From Orbicella franksi (Eukaryota): 64,000 bases of DNA. A program made the position numbers and the translations under genes. The stretch is from the NCBI GenBank assembly GCA_964199315.1, contig OZ116712.1, forward strand, positions 18,042,001-18,106,000, in the 5' to 3' direction. Below are positions 7,981-35,400 of the stretch, piece after piece. The notes beneath the pieces are model-generated. The model did not search any database and was not told the origin of the DNA. It saw only the letters and a list, made by a program, of their open reading frames with translations. Position 1 is the stretch's first letter; the number at the start of each line of letters is the position of its first letter.

Positions 7981-8521
7981 TTATCTTCTTCCTGAGTTCA
8001 CTTTTTCCAGGATGTTTAAAAACTTCCCCCTTGTCATTTCCCGGGCTGAAAAAATGATAAAAACAAACATCAGCTATGCCAATGCATATCATAATGTTAT
8101 TACTATAAAATCCTGGTTGTCCCTATTTCAAATACTGAACAACCAAATTTGTAAATTTGATTTCCCTGATGAATCCTTTGTTGTCTGTTACATTAAAGTT
8201 TACTCATTGACATTGAGTTTCAATTTATGATTTATTTAATACAGTTAAATGGCAAATGGTAAACAAGGAATAAAATTGAAAGCCACACAGATAATTCACA
8301 AAGGAGTCTTTTTTGTAACCCGATGTGGAAACAGATTATTGTACTATATGTATTTATAAGTGTATGTAAAAAACAACATAAAGGCTAAATTAAGACAATG
8401 TGACTTACAGATGGCACCTTCTATATTTGTTTACTTTGCAAGGTTACTAATAGGGATGGACCATATTTTTGTTATGACAGGGGGTGGGTTGTTAGGCAAT
8501 TTCCAATTTTTGCCAAAAGAA

Positions 8522-25464: not shown

Positions 25465-27704
25465 ACCGAGCGAGCATCATCAACATTTGCAAGAAATTCT
25501 TCTGATGGCATGAGAGCACGGAATATAACTGCCTTAACAAACTCGACGACCATAAACTGGGATTTGAAAAAAAAAATTAAGAGGAAAAACATTCCTGAGT
25601 GAAAACAATGTAGATTCGAACGAATAGCAGTTTTTTACTGGCTCGACGCCGCCATGAGGAGCGACCGTTAGCGATAATGGCGCGCGTGCTCCTAGGCTAA
25701 AACAGGGCTGAAAGCATGCCGCGCGGTCTTCACAGATTGTCAAGCTTGATTTTTAATGTTGATTCATCCTGATACTGCTATTTAAACAACTCTTCATGAA
25801 TGAAATGAATGCCGACCATAATAATCATCTAGTAATAAATATTTTTTTCCCACAGACGAATGACTTGTGTTGAGTTTGATCTGTTTCCAAGCTGTTTCCA
25901 TGTAATTCCTCCTATAGGCTAACCTCGATACCATGACCTTTTCATGGGAACGAGGTTGGCTGCGGAGTCCAACAAAACCGCCTGTTTTTTTTTCACTTCC
26001 TTGCATTCAAGAGAAAGTATAGGAATAGAAATGAAGGGATTTGATTATGCAATCGGCCTACCTACCATGCCAGGTGCAAGAGATATTTTAGAACGCAATG
26101 ACCAGCTGATGGCAAACCATGGGGGATGCTCGGGTATATATGATAATGCACGAAGGCGACCACCTTTCTAAGGTTGGAAATTTGGGATCTGAGGACTGAT
26201 CTTGCGGTTAGAGATTTTGTAGCGATTTTTTGGGTGAAAGATTTTGTTCAGGGTTTTTTTAGGTTTTCTCTCACTTTATATAGCAAGCAATTGTAATTTC
26301 ATCAGTTCGGCATTTATAGACGTCTCGGACAGATGCAAATTTAGGCCTCACGGAATGGTTTGCAGTACATCAGCAGGAAAAAATTTATGACATGCGCAGT
26401 TGAACCGTTTCTCGGAAACACTTGCTCCAGTCAAATTATTGTAAACTTTTTGGCTGAATATCGTCTTCCGACGCGAAGTTTTTGGCCCATAGACGTGCTA
26501 AGAAGGAAGAATGGGACACGGCTGAAAGTTCTACCGTTTTAATTTTTTCTCTTTCGTCGCGTAAGTGGCAGAAATACGTATTTTTTTACTTTTTTGCCGT
26601 CCTCAGCGGGCAGAGGCGGTGATGTCGAAAAACCGAAACGGTGAAATTGGAGATTTGCCTTCTAGTTTCCTGGATAATGAAGGTCTGGAGGCCTAGACTG
26701 ATTGCTCTTGAAGTTATTTCAACTTTTTCCCCGCGCGTCCAAGATATTGTAGTGAAATAAATATTGAATGCACTAAGCGCACGGAGACAGCTTGGGAGAT
26801 GTTAAATTCGAGGCTACGAGAGGTGAGTTCACGCTCCATTCTTTCAGGTAAATGCAAATAGTTACCCCCTGCTAGTATTGATTAGTAAGCCACAACAACT
26901 GTTTGGTATTCCAGTAATGATTTTTTCCAGCATAATAGGCACTTTCATTTTTAATGTTCTGAATAAAGGTGGTCTTGTTTAGACATCCCGCTGTTGATAA
27001 CATTTTCATATTTTGGGAGGGAATAAAATTATTCAGTCTGTTGTGCGTTTTATCAGTTACATCAGGTTTTAATAAACACTGCTCTGCTTTACATTCCACT
27101 ATATTAGGCTACTTTCGATTCCTTTCTACCTTGTTTTTTCTCTCATGCAACATGGTACCTCATGTACATTAGTACACTGCTTTATGTTATTTTATCTTAT
27201 ACAAGCTACACTCTTGTGTAATTTTAAGCAAACTTTACGTTAAAAATTACCAATACTTACATTTTTACTGTGAAAATTATGCGGCTTACTTATCATGCTA
27301 GTTTTAAACAACTGCCCCATATGAATGATAATGAAAAACAATTATGTATGTTCAAATCCATTGTAAACTGCCGACTGTACAACTTTACAGCAATCATGCA
27401 TTATAATCACTCAGAAGTATTTTTATATTCACATTCACTGTAAACTGCTGACTGTACAACTCTACAGTAATCATGCATTACATTATAATCACTCAGAAGT
27501 ATTTTGATATTTATGATCACTATTATTTACACTGCAACAATTTGTATTTTACAAATGGGTAAGACTCCCCACAAACTAATTACTTTATCTGAATCTCAGA
27601 TAGAACATAGTTGAAGTGCATTTGTTTAGTATGAAATTGTTACAATTGAAAATAATCTTTTTGTGAAAGTACCTTTTTAGAAAGAGCCACCCCATATTTG
27701 ACTT

Positions 27705-30700
27705 TCATTCTTCTTGTATAGGAAACTGGGTGGTATGCATGTCCAATGTGGATGGAAGATCAATGTTCAAAGACTGTACAATGTTTGGCAGGTTTTGTAC
27801 GAAGAACTGGCATTCTCTTGGTAAGTCATGTGTTGAAAGTTCCTGTCCATAACCCCATACCTCAATAGCTGCAAGTTGCATTAGAGATGGAACCTTTCCA
27901 GCTGTTCTGAATTCTGTAATGACAGTTGGCCGGAATGACCTCTGGTTTTCCAATTGTGATGTGCCTTTGGTGGAAGCTTTCCACTGCAGTTCAAGTTTGC
28001 GGCCTTCAGCTTTGAGGGACTGGATCATGCTTGAGGTGTTGCTATTTAGTTTCCTTGCTTCCCAAGCTTTGGGATATACATCTTTTGCAGTCAGTGGCCC
28101 ATGGTTTTCACATTTTCGGATCATATTTAACTTCTTTCTTGCCTCTTGCAAAAGGTCTGAGGTCAGCATGTTTGCATATGCCTTCATTCTCTCTTCATGT
28201 ACTTCTCTTGCTGCTTCAGTGGTGTGGTTGTTGTTTTTTCCACTGTGAAGTATGTTCTCAACAAATGTTATCAAGGCTTGTTTTGACAGCTCTGACATGT
28301 TGTTTTGAAGATAAAGTTGTGAAAGGTTGAACTGCCTTTCAGCAATTACATTGTTCACAGGAATACTGAAAATGTGTTTGGCATAGAACTCGAAAAGGTG
28401 GGGGTTAGCTTCTTTACTGATGAGACTACTCTGTGGTGATGTTGCAACTCTTTTGATATCATTCAGTAGTTTTGGTTCCTTCAAGTTCCAGATTTCTGCC
28501 CATTTAACTAAACCAGTTCTGTCCTTACAAACCAATGTGTGAAGATTTTGTCCATGGACATAGAAATTTTGCACTGACCTGCTTTCTTTTTCTCTTTCAG
28601 TTGACAGCATGACAGGAATTTCAAGAGCCTTCAAAACAGAATACCAGAAAGAACTTTGGTATCTTGGATCAGCTCCAATTCCAAATAACTTGGGGAAGGA
28701 CAACCACTCTGATCCATGGTCTTTAACAACTTTAAGTGCTTCTTGCAACATTGGCCTCTGCACTTCCTGACGAAAGTGGTTGATGGCTGCAGGATCCTTC
28801 AGTGACATCTTCATCTGCTGCTCAGTTAAAGGAAAATATGCTGATGGAGACATCAACATTTTACTTAATGTTTCATGATGTTTAAGGACAGTTGCTGGCC
28901 ATAATCGTGCCAGGTATCCACTGGAGAAGCCAAGTTCTTGATCTGTTGCTTGTGATGCATTGAGAGATGGAATAAGAAACTTGTCAAGAAACTCATACAA
29001 AAACTTAATTTCCACTTGAATCATTGGACAGGAGCTCAACTTGATAACATTCTGCCACACTGTGTAGTGGCTGTCTGACTTTGGCATTCTTTCCAGGACA
29101 CTCTCTCCAAGTTGTAGACAGGCTTTACCATACTTCAAGTGCCATTGAAGTGTCTCATAATAGTATGTCCACCTCGTGTCAATAAAGGACTGGGGAAGGG
29201 GTGGCTCTTTACTTAAGATTCCTAGTGATACATACATTGATTTGTACTGACTTGGGCGTTCATGATGAAGCCAAGATACCTTATAAAGTAGTTGCAATAC
29301 ATGGTTGTTATTCATGTCACCCTTGGCCCCAAACCCAGCTTGGCACATCCTTCTTAACATAATGTTCAGGACGTGGGGGTAACATCCAACAAAGAACATG
29401 TCCTTTTCAAAAACCCTTGAATTATTTGCTATTAAACCATTAGCCTTCCCCTTCTGGGTTGAGGCATTATCCCCAACCAAACCTGAAACATTAGTTATGC
29501 CATATTCATCATGAACAACATGATATTCTACATCAGACTGGTGTTTTCCTGACCCACTCGCTGTCAAACTGTTACCAAGGACATATGCCCTGGGTTCATT
29601 GATCTCTGGGCACCAGGTGTGGACACCTACAATGTGCCGCTCTTCGCCACCTTTGTTGGAGTCATCACTCCATACATGGAAATCATATTGGCTACTTGCA
29701 AATCTTTTGCGTAATATCAGTTTATCGGCCTCCCCTAATAGGATATTCCAGTCTGCCAGTGTGGATGGCGAGACAACAACATTTGTTGGGGGGCTACAGT
29801 TGAATAAAATACTGAAAATTAGATGTAATGCAATGGGTGTCTTTTGGCTAGAAAGCAAACATGCATGCTGTAAATATCTCATGCAGGCCATAAACATGAC
29901 TGTTCTACGATTTGTTCCATTTTTGCCATGAGAAAATGTGTCCACAAGGGAATACCTAGGTTTCTTTACATTTTCATCATTTTCCTTTAATTGTCTTTTC
30001 AGCTTTGTGGAAGCAGATTTTGTCCCTCGTAGTTTGTTACCGACTTGTTTCGTTTTCAATTCAGTAGACTTCAAAGTTCTTTCACGCTTCTTTGCTTCAC
30101 TTTGTAACTTCAAGACATCTTTCCTTAGGTCATTGTTAATTCTTCTCAAAAATACTGTAAATATGAAAATGATAAATAGGGCCTTACAAGTTTTACTTGT
30201 ATTTTGTTTTTTTTTTTAAACAATAAATTTAAGGATAGAAAAACTTAAGTATACAGTGTACTTGTGTGGATTTCTGAAAGTTACTGTTTCCTCGGCGGTC
30301 CGCTTATATCGAGTCGAGATGTTGACTTGCGAATTTACAAAACGAAAGGCAGACAAACCCTTTGGGGAAAAATTGCATTCTCACAAAATTTACGACTAGA
30401 CTAAAATTTGTCGGTCGCTTTTGGTTAAAAGGCTGTTAACATGAACCTACGAAAGTACCTGAAGTACTGGCGTAATACACGAAAGCCGGCCGGCCACAGA
30501 AAATTAAAAATAACCTAAATATCTATCTAATTTTGAACATTTTGCAATGGTTCGAGCAAGCAGACTTTTTTAAAAGAGCATTTAGCTGCGATTCAAATCT
30601 TGTTTACTGCGTACCCAGCTATGAAGGAGCCCTTTTTTTGCGAAGCGGTGATATCCAGTCCAGAGTATGTTATTAAATTTTTGTCTGCTTCGGAACTCGG

Positions 30701-31279
30701 TGTCCAACTCGATCGCCAAAATCGCCGCTTCAAGTTTGGTATTTTGACACAGCCGTGTCCTATGTGACCATACCATTTAGTTTGCTTCATTTTACAAACT
30801 TTTTAAAACTATTTTCGTTTTAAGTATTCCTTGACCCCTTGTAGTGGTAATATATTATTACGTTAAATAAGTTTGAGTTTAAAAAATTTAGTGACAACAT
30901 CGAAACTCGCATTAATTGACATCGCCACGAATTTTTAATGTATTTGTGGGAAAGCAGCTTTTACTGGTAATTCAGAAGCTTTAAGAAACACTTTTTAGGA
31001 GATTTATAGACGGCTTGATGACTACTTGAGCAGACACCTACCTATACTTCGTCGTAGAGTTTGTATTGTCCTCTTCAGGCCGGCACTTTCACACTGTAGG
31101 CGTTTACAGTCTCGCTCGAGTTTGTCGATTTTTTCCTCGCTCGACAGGTTTTTCAATTCTACTCGGACACTGCTTGCAGCTATTTTTTTCACGTTTTCAT
31201 CGGTAATTTCTTTCTTCTTCTTTACTGACGGTTGATTTAACCGGGAAAAATGACTGCCGTGAACTCTTTTTCGTCCCAT
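27705..31279 (-). CDS. hAT-like DDE transposase, ~895 aa, 2 exons
   Basis: Exon 1 31279-31042 (MGRKRVHG..., donor G|GTAGGT, phase 1) joins exon 2 30154-27705 (acceptor atttacag, phase 1) in frame. The uninterrupted ORF has WSDDS (first Asp), VGDNAS (second Asp), CYPH (CxxH), DTRW and NVIAERQF (Glu). Exon 2 is well supported; the exon 1 link is inferred. Confidence 0.8.
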
Positions 31280-31446
31280 CTGCTCGACATTTTGTTGCAA
31301 TTTTAAAATAATTTGCTTGAGTGAGCTTGAATGTAAACATCAGCGAGTTGAGCCCGCGTATCCCTACGAACAGCAGTTTCCCAAAAAAAAGTACTCTGCG
31401 CATGTCACAAAAAATTGGGCATCAGCGGTCCAAGGGGTAGGATACC

Positions 31447-31646
31447 NNNNNNNNNNNNNNNNNNNNNNNNNNNNNNNNNNNNNNNNNNNNNNNNNNNNNN
31501 NNNNNNNNNNNNNNNNNNNNNNNNNNNNNNNNNNNNNNNNNNNNNNNNNNNNNNNNNNNNNNNNNNNNNNNNNNNNNNNNNNNNNNNNNNNNNNNNNNNN
31601 NNNNNNNNNNNNNNNNNNNNNNNNNNNNNNNNNNNNNNNNNNNNNN
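31447..31646. other. Assembly gap (200 N)
   Basis: Run of exactly 200 N. Confidence 1.
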
Positions 31647-32471
31647 GTTCCGTGAGGCCTAAAATTACATGCAAATGACAATGAGAATTCCTGTTTTAGC
31701 GGAAGGAACTCTCCTCTTGATGCTTCGGACTTTTGGACTCTTGGGGTTACGTTCTGGGTTTTTGGATTTTTTGGGTCTGATGGAACCTTTTTGGGGTCCC
31801 ACAATGTGATCTCCCCGTTACTATGGTATCCGAGTACCCCTAACGCCTCTTCCACCCCTTTCCCCCAACCGCCTTCCCTAGGATGGTGAAGCTCCAGCTT
31901 CTTGAGTACAACACTCGCGTTGTTAAAAGCCTTTTTCAAATTTCCATTATCTTGGTCTTTTAAGTGTCTACTTTACCCGCAGACGCGAGCAAGCTAATGC
32001 ATTTTCTGTATCTTACAGCGCGTATGTCTGGAAGTGATAGCACGTCAAGCTGTCTACTTTTGCGTGAAAATAAATGCGTGGTTTATTTTATACGTGCGTA
32101 AATTCGCGAAATAACCTGAAGCGTTATTATGCGTGGGTTATAATTGTTGTCTAAGTGTTTCATCTGCTTGCATCTGAGGGAAAAAGCCGAGTCACGTCCT
32201 GGAAAGCGAAACGTAATCTTCTCTATTTTATCTTCGGCGCAGTCTTCGGCATGGACTCGCAAAGACTCCGGGCGACTCGGTAAATGTTTCGTCATTCGGA
32301 AAAAAGTGCGAAGCCTGGGAACGAGACCGATGGCAACAAAATAACCATCGAGACAAGTTCGGCTGCAACAGATGTTTGTCTACGTTCGGAAATTCTCTCA
32401 CAAGTTCAGTTTCAAACTCGTAAACTAACATGTTTTGATGCATGCGGAACGTTTAGTGTCATAGGGGAATA

Positions 32472-35400
32472 ATGGCTGAAGGTGGTAGTCGGCCTTGGTC
32501 GCGCCATCGAAACCGCCGCCGACAAAACGACAGAGAAGGAAGGGAAAATGAAGAGATTGACCGAGATCTGCTCAGAGTTGTTCTTAGCGATTCTGAAGAC
32601 TTCGTTCCTGAGGACGTAAAAAGCACATCGTCTGTTGCCTGTAGCTGTGCTTCAGATTTTCAAGAGGAGCAAACTGGCTGTAATTCGTCTAACGTGAAAA
32701 GCTGTCCGAACTTGAGCGATTTGGATCCCGAGATTCGTTCTCGCAGCTTTCGTTGGTTAGTCAGGCAAGTTAGTCGTCGGAAAAGTGCCAAGGAGTCTGG
32801 AAAACGTCCCTCTGATAAGAATCGTAGAAGTGACCGGGACAAGAATGGCCTTAGCTACCATGCTCGATGCCTACAAGAAGCGAAACGAGTCAGGCGAGCG
32901 GCCGAGTTGGAAGCTATCAACCGCAGGACGAGACCACAGCAAGCTCGGCGAAGAAGGCCCCTGAGTTTGCTTAACTTCAGGTCCGGAAACGATGAACGAG
33001 GAGTGCAGGATGCGGGAAGAAAGAGATTTTCGTTCTCTTGGGGGTTTCGACAGGACGATTCAACCACCCAAGTTGATGAACGTCGCGATCGAGCCAACAC
33101 AGTGCCCCCAAGACCGCTGTCACCAACACCACCGTCAGATGACTCTCCAACTGACGATGGAAGAACGAACGCGATGAGCTTCGATGACTTTGAGAGAAAA
33201 AGAAGAGAAAAGGCTCGTTTGAAAGCAGCGCAACATAAACTGGAGTATTTCCTCATCAGCGACATCGTTTCCATCACAAATTGCCCGTGGTATTGGGGGA
33301 AAATTAATAGGTTTGAAGCGGAAAAGGTGAGAGCTTTGTAACTTTTAACTTCATTAACCCGAATGATACAAGATGTTGGTAAAATTTCATTATTGTCATT
33401 GTCAAAAGTGCGGGAAGGTGTTACGCTTTTGTTTGGTTAGAAAGAAAGGTTAACAGTGGTATTTCATTTTCATTAGTTTTTGCGATTCATATCATACAAA
33501 CTGGATAGTTTAGAGAACGTATTTTTTAATATACGTGGGCCATGCAGTAAAAACACAGTAGCTACGAATAAGAAAGGTTATGCTCGAAAATAAATTGATT
33601 GTAAAAGGGCAAAACATTTAAATTAGGTGAAAAATTGATGAGATGTTTAGCTGTTTTAGAAGCAGTTATCCTATTGTTAAAATGCCCCGGAAAAAAGACC
33701 AAGTCGTGAGATGTCAATTGGCACCTGCTTTGTCTCCAAAACCTGACACTTTCTAAAACGCATATTTTTATGAGTAATTTTGTCAATAGATTGTTACTAA
33801 TGCATTGATCAAATTTCTCAGATGTCACGACAATTAATTATAGGAGGTTCGGTTTCATGAAGCAGCAAGAATTTATAGAAAAAGAAAACTACTTACAGAC
33901 TTTTGTTATATATCATTATATGTATGTCAAGCTGGTAGGCAGCAAATAAAATTTGGAAGCACTTCAAGAATGACATATATGGACAGCTTAATTTGTGGAC
34001 ACTGCCTGCAACAGTCAGGGAATTTTGGTCTAACTGCAAATGCAAACATTATACCATGAAAATTTTGCATAAGTATTTAATCACTAATTCTGATCTAAAA
34101 TGAGTTCTTGTACATTTTGTGAACTGTTTTTCAATATGTAATTTTGCTTCAAAGCTTTTCTGCATACATCTCAGAGAATGATAAAATAATGCAAGTGGCT
34201 TTCTCAGGCCTAGGTGTTAAGGAAACTATATACGCCTACGTTAAGAACTCTGTCAGTTTACAAATTACTTAGTTTTTCCACGCCTAATGTTTGGACTTAA
34301 TTTCATGTTTTGACCACAAGAAAGTTTAAAAAGACAGTTTGAATTGCCTTATAGTCTTATCAGTAAAATTCATAATTCCGATTGGTTCATCTTACATCTG
34401 GGTTGTCACCTAGTTGAAAAATATCAGCATAGGTGTTTGGTTATTGTGAGTATGCATGTATTTCTCTTTTTGTTTTTCTAAACCAAAAAAAGTTGCAATT
34501 CTGAAAAAAGTTTCAACAAATGTCTTGCATTATCCTATTTTTGAGCCAGTCAGTGATAAATTTCACTAGGACTTTGCACCTCTAGATATTTGAACACAGC
34601 TGTTTCAAGAAATATTGTCAGATTCAAGCATCAAGCTTATGTGACAAGACCAAACAATCAAAAAACTATTGACTAGGTCATATATTTTACGCATGCACTT
34701 TGTTTTGACTTCCAAGAGATCGTTTGTTTTGTACATTTTTGCAGGACTTCAGGGTTTTGCCGCAGGTTTAGCAGAAATAGCATGTTTAAAGTAAAAACAA
34801 GGACAGAAAACAAGTTTTTATTGCTGCTTTATGTCATCAATATTTTATTAGCACATATATTGCTTTTCATAATATTTTTCTTCTAATCCACCTTTTTCTC
34901 ATTACAAGTGGGCTTAGTGCTTTCATCTAGAAATTTTCACTGCAATGAGTGTTAATATGCAAGCTTTTGCAAGAATAAAACCAGATGGACTGTTTGATAA
35001 ATTGAACAATTATTTATTTTTACCTCAGATACTGGAAGGCTTTCCTGATGGAACATTCCTGTTACGTGACAGTGCGCAATACCACTATCTGTTCTCAGTG
35101 AGTTTTCGTAGATACTCCCGAACATACCATGCAAGGATTGAACAGTGGAAGCACAGATACAGCTTCGACAAACCAAGTGACTATTCATTCTGTTCAAAAA
35201 GTGTTTGTCAGTTGTTACAGCATTACTCTCGTGCAGAGCAATGCATGTATTATGAACCTCTGCTGTTGAAGCCGCTACACCGAAGCAATCCAGTGTCCCT
35301 ACAGGATCTCTGTCGCGCAACAATCTGTAGTCAGACAACTTTTCAAGGAGTCAGCGACCTTCCTGTACCGAATTCTATGAAGATTTTCTTGAGAGAGTTT

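Follow-up and report, generated by a model that had tools for sequence, protein, structure and literature searches.

Does the transposase of a coral DNA transposon carry near its end a box by which it could join a ubiquitin ligase of its host? The question is raised by a stretch of 64,000 nucleotides from Orbicella franksi (GenBank assembly GCA_964199315.1, contig OZ116712.1, positions 18,042,001 to 18,106,000 of the forward strand), hereafter the window, whose own numbering is used unless another sequence is named. It contains a hAT element, from about 26333 to 31670, whose predicted transposase has a C-terminal tail that a first-pass annotation had likened to an Elongin BC box followed by a cullin box, on the plan of SOCS and VHL boxes. 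We find this tail to be a real, selected protein module and no chance string. As to what it does, the best single explanation is that it works as a VHL box of the FEM1 type, a reading of its sequence that we put forward tentatively and weigh below against its competitors.

A selected module near the transposase C-terminus

The main open reading frame (ORF) of the transposase encodes 814 amino acids (aa) plus a stop (27705-30149, minus strand; stop at 27705-27707). The module takes up about 40 residues near its end, aa 753-792. On the minus strand throughout, it opens with VP and a helix resembling a BC box (aa 753-764, VPSLMQLAAIEV, 27858-27893), which can be read as S755-L-x-x-L-A-A-x-x-V764; there follow a spacer of 11 residues (WGYGQELSTHD, 27825-27857), a stretch resembling a Cul2 box (LPRECQFFV, aa 776-784, 27798-27824), and QNLP (27786-27797), where the conserved module ends. 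Letters and coordinates of both motif blocks had been given correctly in the first-pass annotation, which had further placed them just beyond the catalytic Glu and let the protein end at ...QFFV. The box in fact lies about 150 residues downstream of that Glu, E604, and the ORF goes on for 30 residues to a terminus reading ...PIQEE. The final Glu-Glu (27708-27713, minus strand), directly before the stop, is invariant in all coral copies. Ahead of the box is a poorly conserved linker predicted to be disordered (aa 716-752, 27894-28004, minus strand), with a predicted local distance difference test score (pLDDT) below 50 for aa 716-756.

Five tails were first compared (alignment A2): that of the window, those of three copies in other assemblies (L001, L002 and L004), and that of a decayed Stylophora copy (L003). 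They have in common V-P-x-L-x-x-L-A-A-x-x-V-W-x-x-G-x-E-L-x-x-x-D-L-P-x-E-C-(5 residues)-N-L-P plus the terminal EE, and the residues flanking the module on either side differ between copies. Substitution rates were estimated by the Nei-Gojobori method between the three intact copies. For the box, aa 753-792, the nonsynonymous rate (dN) is 0.17-0.33, the synonymous rate (dS) exceeds 1.4 or is saturated, and dN/dS is 0.07-0.23. The catalytic core has a dN of about 0.1, the linker before the box (aa 739-752) about 0.5, and the stretch after the box 0.6-0.8. Conservation of the box is therefore at the protein level, synonymous sites being saturated while dN is low.

These figures bear on the explanation that the tail itself serves no function and owes its conservation to constraint on the DNA or to recent common descent. 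We consider this very unlikely: near-identical copies within one genus would suit it, but residues have been kept at saturated synonymous sites, the nearest terminal inverted repeat (TIR) is 1.4 kb from the box, and the box persists, between diverging linkers, in copies of the Acropora type, in Stylophora and in others that are far more distant. The TIR distance and the combination of saturated dS with low dN also rule out conservation of the DNA through subterminal transposase-binding sites.

A profile was run against 1.84 billion representative proteins and gave 17 matches, all of them pieces of the same transposon family, with no host protein among them. Four of these matches (P0030, P0032, P0036 and P0037) are much more divergent and still keep the module; P0037 also has the upstream ...RSF.PT motif of the transposase family. 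With them the comparison grows to nine members, with identities down to 27% (alignment A3). Here the spacer retains an invariant Gly within a conserved [YFH]-G-[EDQ]-x-[LMI], L-P-x-E-C is invariant, and the Pro of QNLP is invariant and preceded by L or I. The module is thus found in Acropora, Stylophora and more distant copies; intact ORFs (Acropora RefSeq models and the P0002 cluster) retain the box, and frameshifted fragments are altered at key residues. Sponge-type and other distant relatives stop shortly after the RSF motif and do not have the box, which is therefore a lineage-specific C-terminal addition.

The very end of the protein is a separate matter. The coral copies (window, L001, L002, L003 and L004) all have -EE as their last two residues, despite rapid evolution and in-frame indels in the roughly 20 residues before it, and the same ending occurs in the box-bearing divergent fragment P0030 and in the box-less relative P0011. 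Since CRL4-DCAF12 prefers a C-terminal di-Glu as its degron (PMC9929631), the terminal -EE may be a second link to cullin ligases.

Resemblance to VHL boxes and competing readings

The published consensus for the BC box is (S,T,P)LXXX(C,S,A)XXXPhi, where Phi is hydrophobic (PMC4878042). That for the Cul2 box is PhiPXXPhiXXXPhi, 8-23 residues downstream of the BC box and usually with Leu at the first position (PMC3355856). The window tail reads S-L-MQL-A-AIE-V, then 11 residues, a spacing inside the range for VHL boxes, then L-P-RE-C-QFF-V. Its S755-L-M-Q-L-A-A-I-E-V764 agrees with the BC-box pattern, as do the corresponding residues in eight of the nine A3 members, the exception being the decayed Stylophora copy with Arg at position 1. 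Throughout A3, position 2 of the BC box (L756) is invariantly Leu, position 6 (760) is only Ala or Cys, and position 10 (764) is V, L, M or I; A761 and the L-P of the cullin box are invariant, and the last cullin-box position is V, I or L. P0036 and P0037 have Cys in place of the Ala of the coral copies. Conservation in homologous transposases had been proposed as a check on the motif, and it was borne out: every intact A3 member, down to 27% identity, keeps it and matches the BC plus Cul2 consensus and spacing, with Cys counted as hydrophobic.

The literature pattern was also scanned for in the window's stop-free stretches of at least 80 aa (six frames, 14,573 residues). It has exactly two matches there, the transposase tail and the SOCS box of a neighbouring gene, and none in the box-less relatives, 7,578 residues in all; of 120 SOCS4/5 homologues it picks up 105. 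A narrower SOCS-like pattern arises in 0.02% of shuffled sequences; it was composed after seeing the sequence and is given no P-value.

The closest validated look-alike of the tail, a marginal one as judged from sequence, is the VHL box of FEM1B. By cryo-electron microscopy, the FEM1B BC box (597-608) is bound to ELOC and the cullin box (617-627) to CUL2 (PMC10943247). FEM1B residues 596-627 match PDB chain 8wqa_D exactly, and chain 8pql_H of FEM1C is related. The first-pass annotation had named FEM1 among BC boxes with Ala for Cys, and the FEM1B box of 8wqa indeed has it. The tail's LPRECQFFV falls in register with FEM1B I616-P-R-T-L-E-E-F-V624, and hhalign of the tail against FEM1B 596-627 gave P=0.0045 over 12 columns, in the BC part.

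A further pointer comes from language-model features in the ESM Atlas. The clusters nearest to the window tail include SOCS_box (0.82 and 0.80), Vif (0.72), VHL (0.69) and KLHDC-type Kelch (0.52-0.49), and those nearest to the P0037 box are SOCS_box (0.87 with 167 shared features, and 0.86), Vif (0.76) and VHL (0.70). All four of these groups bind Elongin BC, and such neighbours for two of the three tails form a coherent lead, no proof. All told, the sequence features suggest that the tail may truly bind Elongin BC, to which we would give somewhat less than an even chance.

A number of results weigh against a cullin-ligase box. The third tail submitted to the Atlas, of the Acropora type, found unrelated bacterial matches, and no Atlas score reaches the line that the tool draws at 0.9. 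The match to FEM1B is marginal (Smith-Waterman z of about 2, no alignment by BLASTP), and FEM1B was chosen after the fact. The profile check for SOCS_box or VHL homology failed: Pfam SOCS_box, VHL and VHL_C match none of nine tails at E up to 10, and PDB searches with the A2 profile, the A3 profile and a single tail returned no SOCS, VHL or FEM1 chain. Helices are predicted at 756-767, 778-785 and 787-792, compatible with a three-helix box; the model is of low confidence here (pLDDT about 50), and Foldseek shape searches of the PDB and the Atlas gave noise. The strictly hydrophobic Cul2 pattern has no match in the tail, because the middle residue is the invariant Cys, so that the tail fits the Cul2 box only with Cys counted as hydrophobic. 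Nor does the tail contain the LPxP of a Cul5 box, whose consensus is LPPhiP (PMC3355856): it reads L-P-R-E, and Pro is missing from the fourth position throughout the family, so the box, if it is one, would be of the Cul2 (VHL) type. The invariant Gly, Glu-Cys and NLP are left unaccounted for by the BC and Cul consensus. The motif is moreover degenerate, the BC plus Cul2 pattern (Cys allowed) arising in 2% of shuffles of the 814-aa protein and the BC-box pattern alone in 60%, and it had been picked in the first place because it matched.

Comparison with a genuine SOCS box close by was likewise unfavourable. Outside the element, 7 kb from the transposase box, lies a SOCS4/5 orthologue (its homologues are named SOCS4 or SOCS5), and the first-pass annotation was right that its SOCS box is real: the box (35287-35391, plus strand) matches Pfam SOCS_box at E=2.8e-9 and 37.5 bits, and the protein has an SH2 domain as well. 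Its pattern is SLQDLCRATI, 11 residues, LPVPNSMKIFL (35296-35391, plus strand), and a region-restricted homologue search with this box found a single near-identical protein. The parallel that had been drawn between this box and the transposase tail proved no better than chance. By hhalign the two are related with a probability of 0.7%, and against a profile of 115 SOCS4/5 boxes the tail scores 7.4, which is equalled or bettered by 75% of column shuffles. Because the best register of the profiles sets the tail's L-P on the second Phi-P of the SOCS box, the agreement of the two spacers at 11 residues is in part accidental. Homology with the neighbour's SOCS box, or capture from it, was rejected, the profile tests being at chance level and the flanks of the other copies unrelated. 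Around those copies the DNA is unrelated and contains no SOCS gene, and the adjacency is therefore coincidental. We likewise reject membership of the tail in the Pfam SOCS-box family (PF07525).

Much of this would be expected if the module were a conserved helix-loop-helix for some other partner, such as another transposase subunit (for oligomerisation or auto-inhibition), a host cofactor or the body of the transposase itself, the VHL-box fit arising incidentally from an amphipathic helix with L-P after it. The consensus positions would then be merely the hydrophobic face of a helix, and the invariant G, E-C and NLP, which lie outside every BC or Cul box definition, the failure of every profile method to see a SOCS or VHL box, and the noise in one of three Atlas runs would cause no surprise. 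This explanation is a real possibility, almost as likely as a VHL box. It leaves unexplained, however, the SOCS_box, Vif and VHL clusters for two members at 27% identity, the restriction to A or C at a position where C, S and A are allowed, and the in-register, two-part FEM1B match; it is further opposed by the disordered linker that separates the module from the transposase body, and by the sponge-type relatives, which keep the rest without the module.

Two other readings concern the first helix. It might be a Bcl-2 homology 3 (BH3) motif binding Bcl-2-family proteins, which would account for the invariant Ala, the Gly and the next acidic residue. The helix of P0036 and P0037, C-A-x-x-[IM]-R-x-F-G-D-x-[LI], resembles the BH3 of NOXA; Pfam PMAIP1 (NOXA) is found at E=0.07 in P0036 (residues 3-21) and at E=0.13 in P0037 (residues 45-61), and the A3 profile matches the NOXA BH3 peptide 3mqp_B at E=0.49. 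These E-values are all at chance level, however, the BH3 pattern Phi-Sigma-x-x-Phi-x-x-Phi-[GAS]-D-x-Phi is matched only by P0036 and P0037, and at the position of the key Asp the window copy has Gln, the remaining coral copies Glu. With the second conserved block, DLPxEC...P, left unexplained, we regard a BH3 function as highly improbable.

Equally hard to credit is a nuclear export signal of the Rev type, for which the consensus is L-x2-L-x2-Phi-x-Phi. L756-MQ-L759-AA-I762-E-V764 matches it, but so do 10 other stretches of the transposase; P0030, P0032, P0036 and P0037 have H, C, S or A where the signal should have its third hydrophobic residue, and again the second block is not explained.

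An F-box reading of the LPxE block was also considered and dropped: by eye, the F-box hydrophobic positions 6, 10 and 13 are Q, Q and P, and conservation does not reach far enough downstream.

The transposase and its element

The protein that carries the module is, by its predicted structure, a hAT transposase, as the first-pass annotation had assumed. Relatives down to 35% identity, a sponge protein included, were aligned (alignment A1), and the AlphaFold2 model built on this alignment has an overall pLDDT of 66.6, with a core above 80. Foldseek matched the model to the Hermes transposase 4d1q (E=6e-8, probability 1.00, TM score 0.59 by target), and no other fold comes near; in the predicted structure, as in Hermes, a helical domain is inserted into an RNase-H fold. 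D162/D163, D227, C256/H259 (CxxH) and R326-W327 are invariant in A1, and the presumed catalytic Glu, E604 in AERQFN (codon 28338-28340, minus strand), is nearly so, at 90% or more. To the DDE, CxxH and RW residues are added the TIRs and the occurrence of copies in unrelated flanks. Pfam finds neither a BED finger nor a hAT dimerisation domain above threshold in the transposase; Dimer_Tnp_hAT appears only weakly, at E=0.099, over the E604 stretch.

A hAT transposase in which Pfam detects no BED zinc finger is unusual. The N-terminus of the ORF (29970-30149, minus strand) is predicted to be one long helix, aa 2-60, likely a coiled coil. Upstream of it is a probable further coding exon (31022-31300, minus strand) with a coiled-coil and a basic N-terminus; its translation matches the N-termini of Montipora P0006 and of 903-aa Acropora RefSeq models.

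The element is bounded by TIRs at 26333-26355 and 31648-31670, with 23-nt arms that are 91% complementary. The independent copies L001 and L004 become similar to the window from 26337 and 26349 on, at the left TIR. The element alone is common to L001, L002 and L004, all in other assemblies, and the flanks are unrelated, by which its mobility is shown. It is a genuine hAT transposon of acroporid-type stony corals, and apparently an active one. The best protein matches of the window are from Montipora, Acropora, Stylophora and Oculina, and its GC content is 38.6%.

No clean 8-bp target-site duplication was seen beside the TIRs (26328-26340 and 31664-31676 inspected); ATGCA and ATGTA stand at these edges and may belong to the repeat. 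Directly against the right TIR, within the element, is a run of 200 N (31447-31646), and the element's 5′ non-coding end is therefore unreadable in the window. Short tandem repeats, each about 90 bp, are suggested for the non-coding part that separates the ORF stop from the left TIR: over 27348-27513 the L004 copy aligns repeatedly, in overlapping registers.

In L004, which is 95% identical to the window copy, a stop codon stands in frame where the window copy has S738, just ahead of the box (L004 about 8220-8232). The box and the -EE are still readable beyond this stop, and we therefore take L004 for a very recently inactivated copy. The Stylophora pistillata sequence L003 (LSMT01000232.1, 8001-16535) is represented at NCBI by a protein called "Zinc finger MYM-type protein 1" (P0016, PF14291). 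This is a chimeric gene model, in which an unrelated DUF4371 hAT runs on into the tail of a decayed member of the window transposon family, with stops and frameshifts upstream of the tail.

A possible link to cullin ligases and comparison with known systems

If the module is a VHL box, the expected contacts are those of its first helix, S-L-x-x-L-A/C-A-x-x-Phi, with Elongin C and of L-P-x-E-C-x-x-Phi-Phi, 11 residues on, with Cul2. This would make the transposase a receptor of an Elongin BC-Cul2-Rbx1 ligase and probably one of its substrates as well. The consequence might be self-limiting turnover of the transposase or ubiquitin-driven disassembly of the transposase-DNA complex; alternatively a host factor might be degraded, as it is by viral BC-box proteins. 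The whole picture, which we offer with reserve as a possibility, would be of a transposase with a FEM1-type VHL box, and perhaps a di-Glu degron, that joins the host's Elongin BC-Cul2 and possibly CRL4-DCAF12, for timed self-destruction, disassembly of the very stable complex of transposase and DNA or destruction of a host defence factor, the DNA-transposon counterpart of Vif and E4orf6.

Viral hijacking of Elongin BC-cullin ligases through short BC boxes is well known; our literature search found no DNA transposase with a BC box. If the coral box does bind Elongin BC, it would mean that cut-and-paste transposons too exploit the host ubiquitin machinery, and it would supply a concrete mechanism for the self-limitation or disassembly of eukaryotic transposition complexes, with a small testable handle in one helix and a few point mutants. 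Whatever its partner, the module is a new selected C-terminal addition in a poorly described coral hAT lineage that has no Pfam annotation.

Among known systems, Hermes and other hATs share with the coral transposase the fold, the DDE triad, the CxxH and RW motifs and short TIRs; the coral protein differs in having about 210 residues past the catalytic Glu, the box included, and a long coiled coil at its N-terminus. The SOCS box (PF07525) is built on the same plan as the tail, a BC-box helix, a spacer, then L-P and hydrophobics, and is likewise C-terminal, but the coral tail has no Pfam match and no LPPhiP Cul5 box. Several viral proteins (lentiviral Vif, adenovirus E4orf6, Epstein-Barr virus BZLF1 and African swine fever virus MGF505-1R) use BC boxes against host Elongin BC-cullin ligases (PMC3355856, PMC4878042, PMC13342108). 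There too a selfish element has a short BC box for the host ligases, as proposed for the coral tail; those proteins, however, are accessory proteins with proven binding and known targets, whereas the coral box, a putative one, is carried by the transposase itself. Nearest in form are the VHL boxes of FEM1B and FEM1C (8wqa, 8pql), which like the coral tail are C-terminal, have Ala for Cys in the BC box and lack LPxP. FEM1B and the tail both read SL..LAA..V and then [IL]PR.[LC]..FV in the same register, with a spacer of 10 residues in FEM1B and 11 in the coral. The coral tail has Cys for Leu in the cullin box and an invariant Gly in the spacer, and about 26 more residues follow its box, whereas that of FEM1B ends the protein; and the FEM1B box is borne on ankyrin and tetratricopeptide (TPR) repeats, that of the coral on a DDE transposase.

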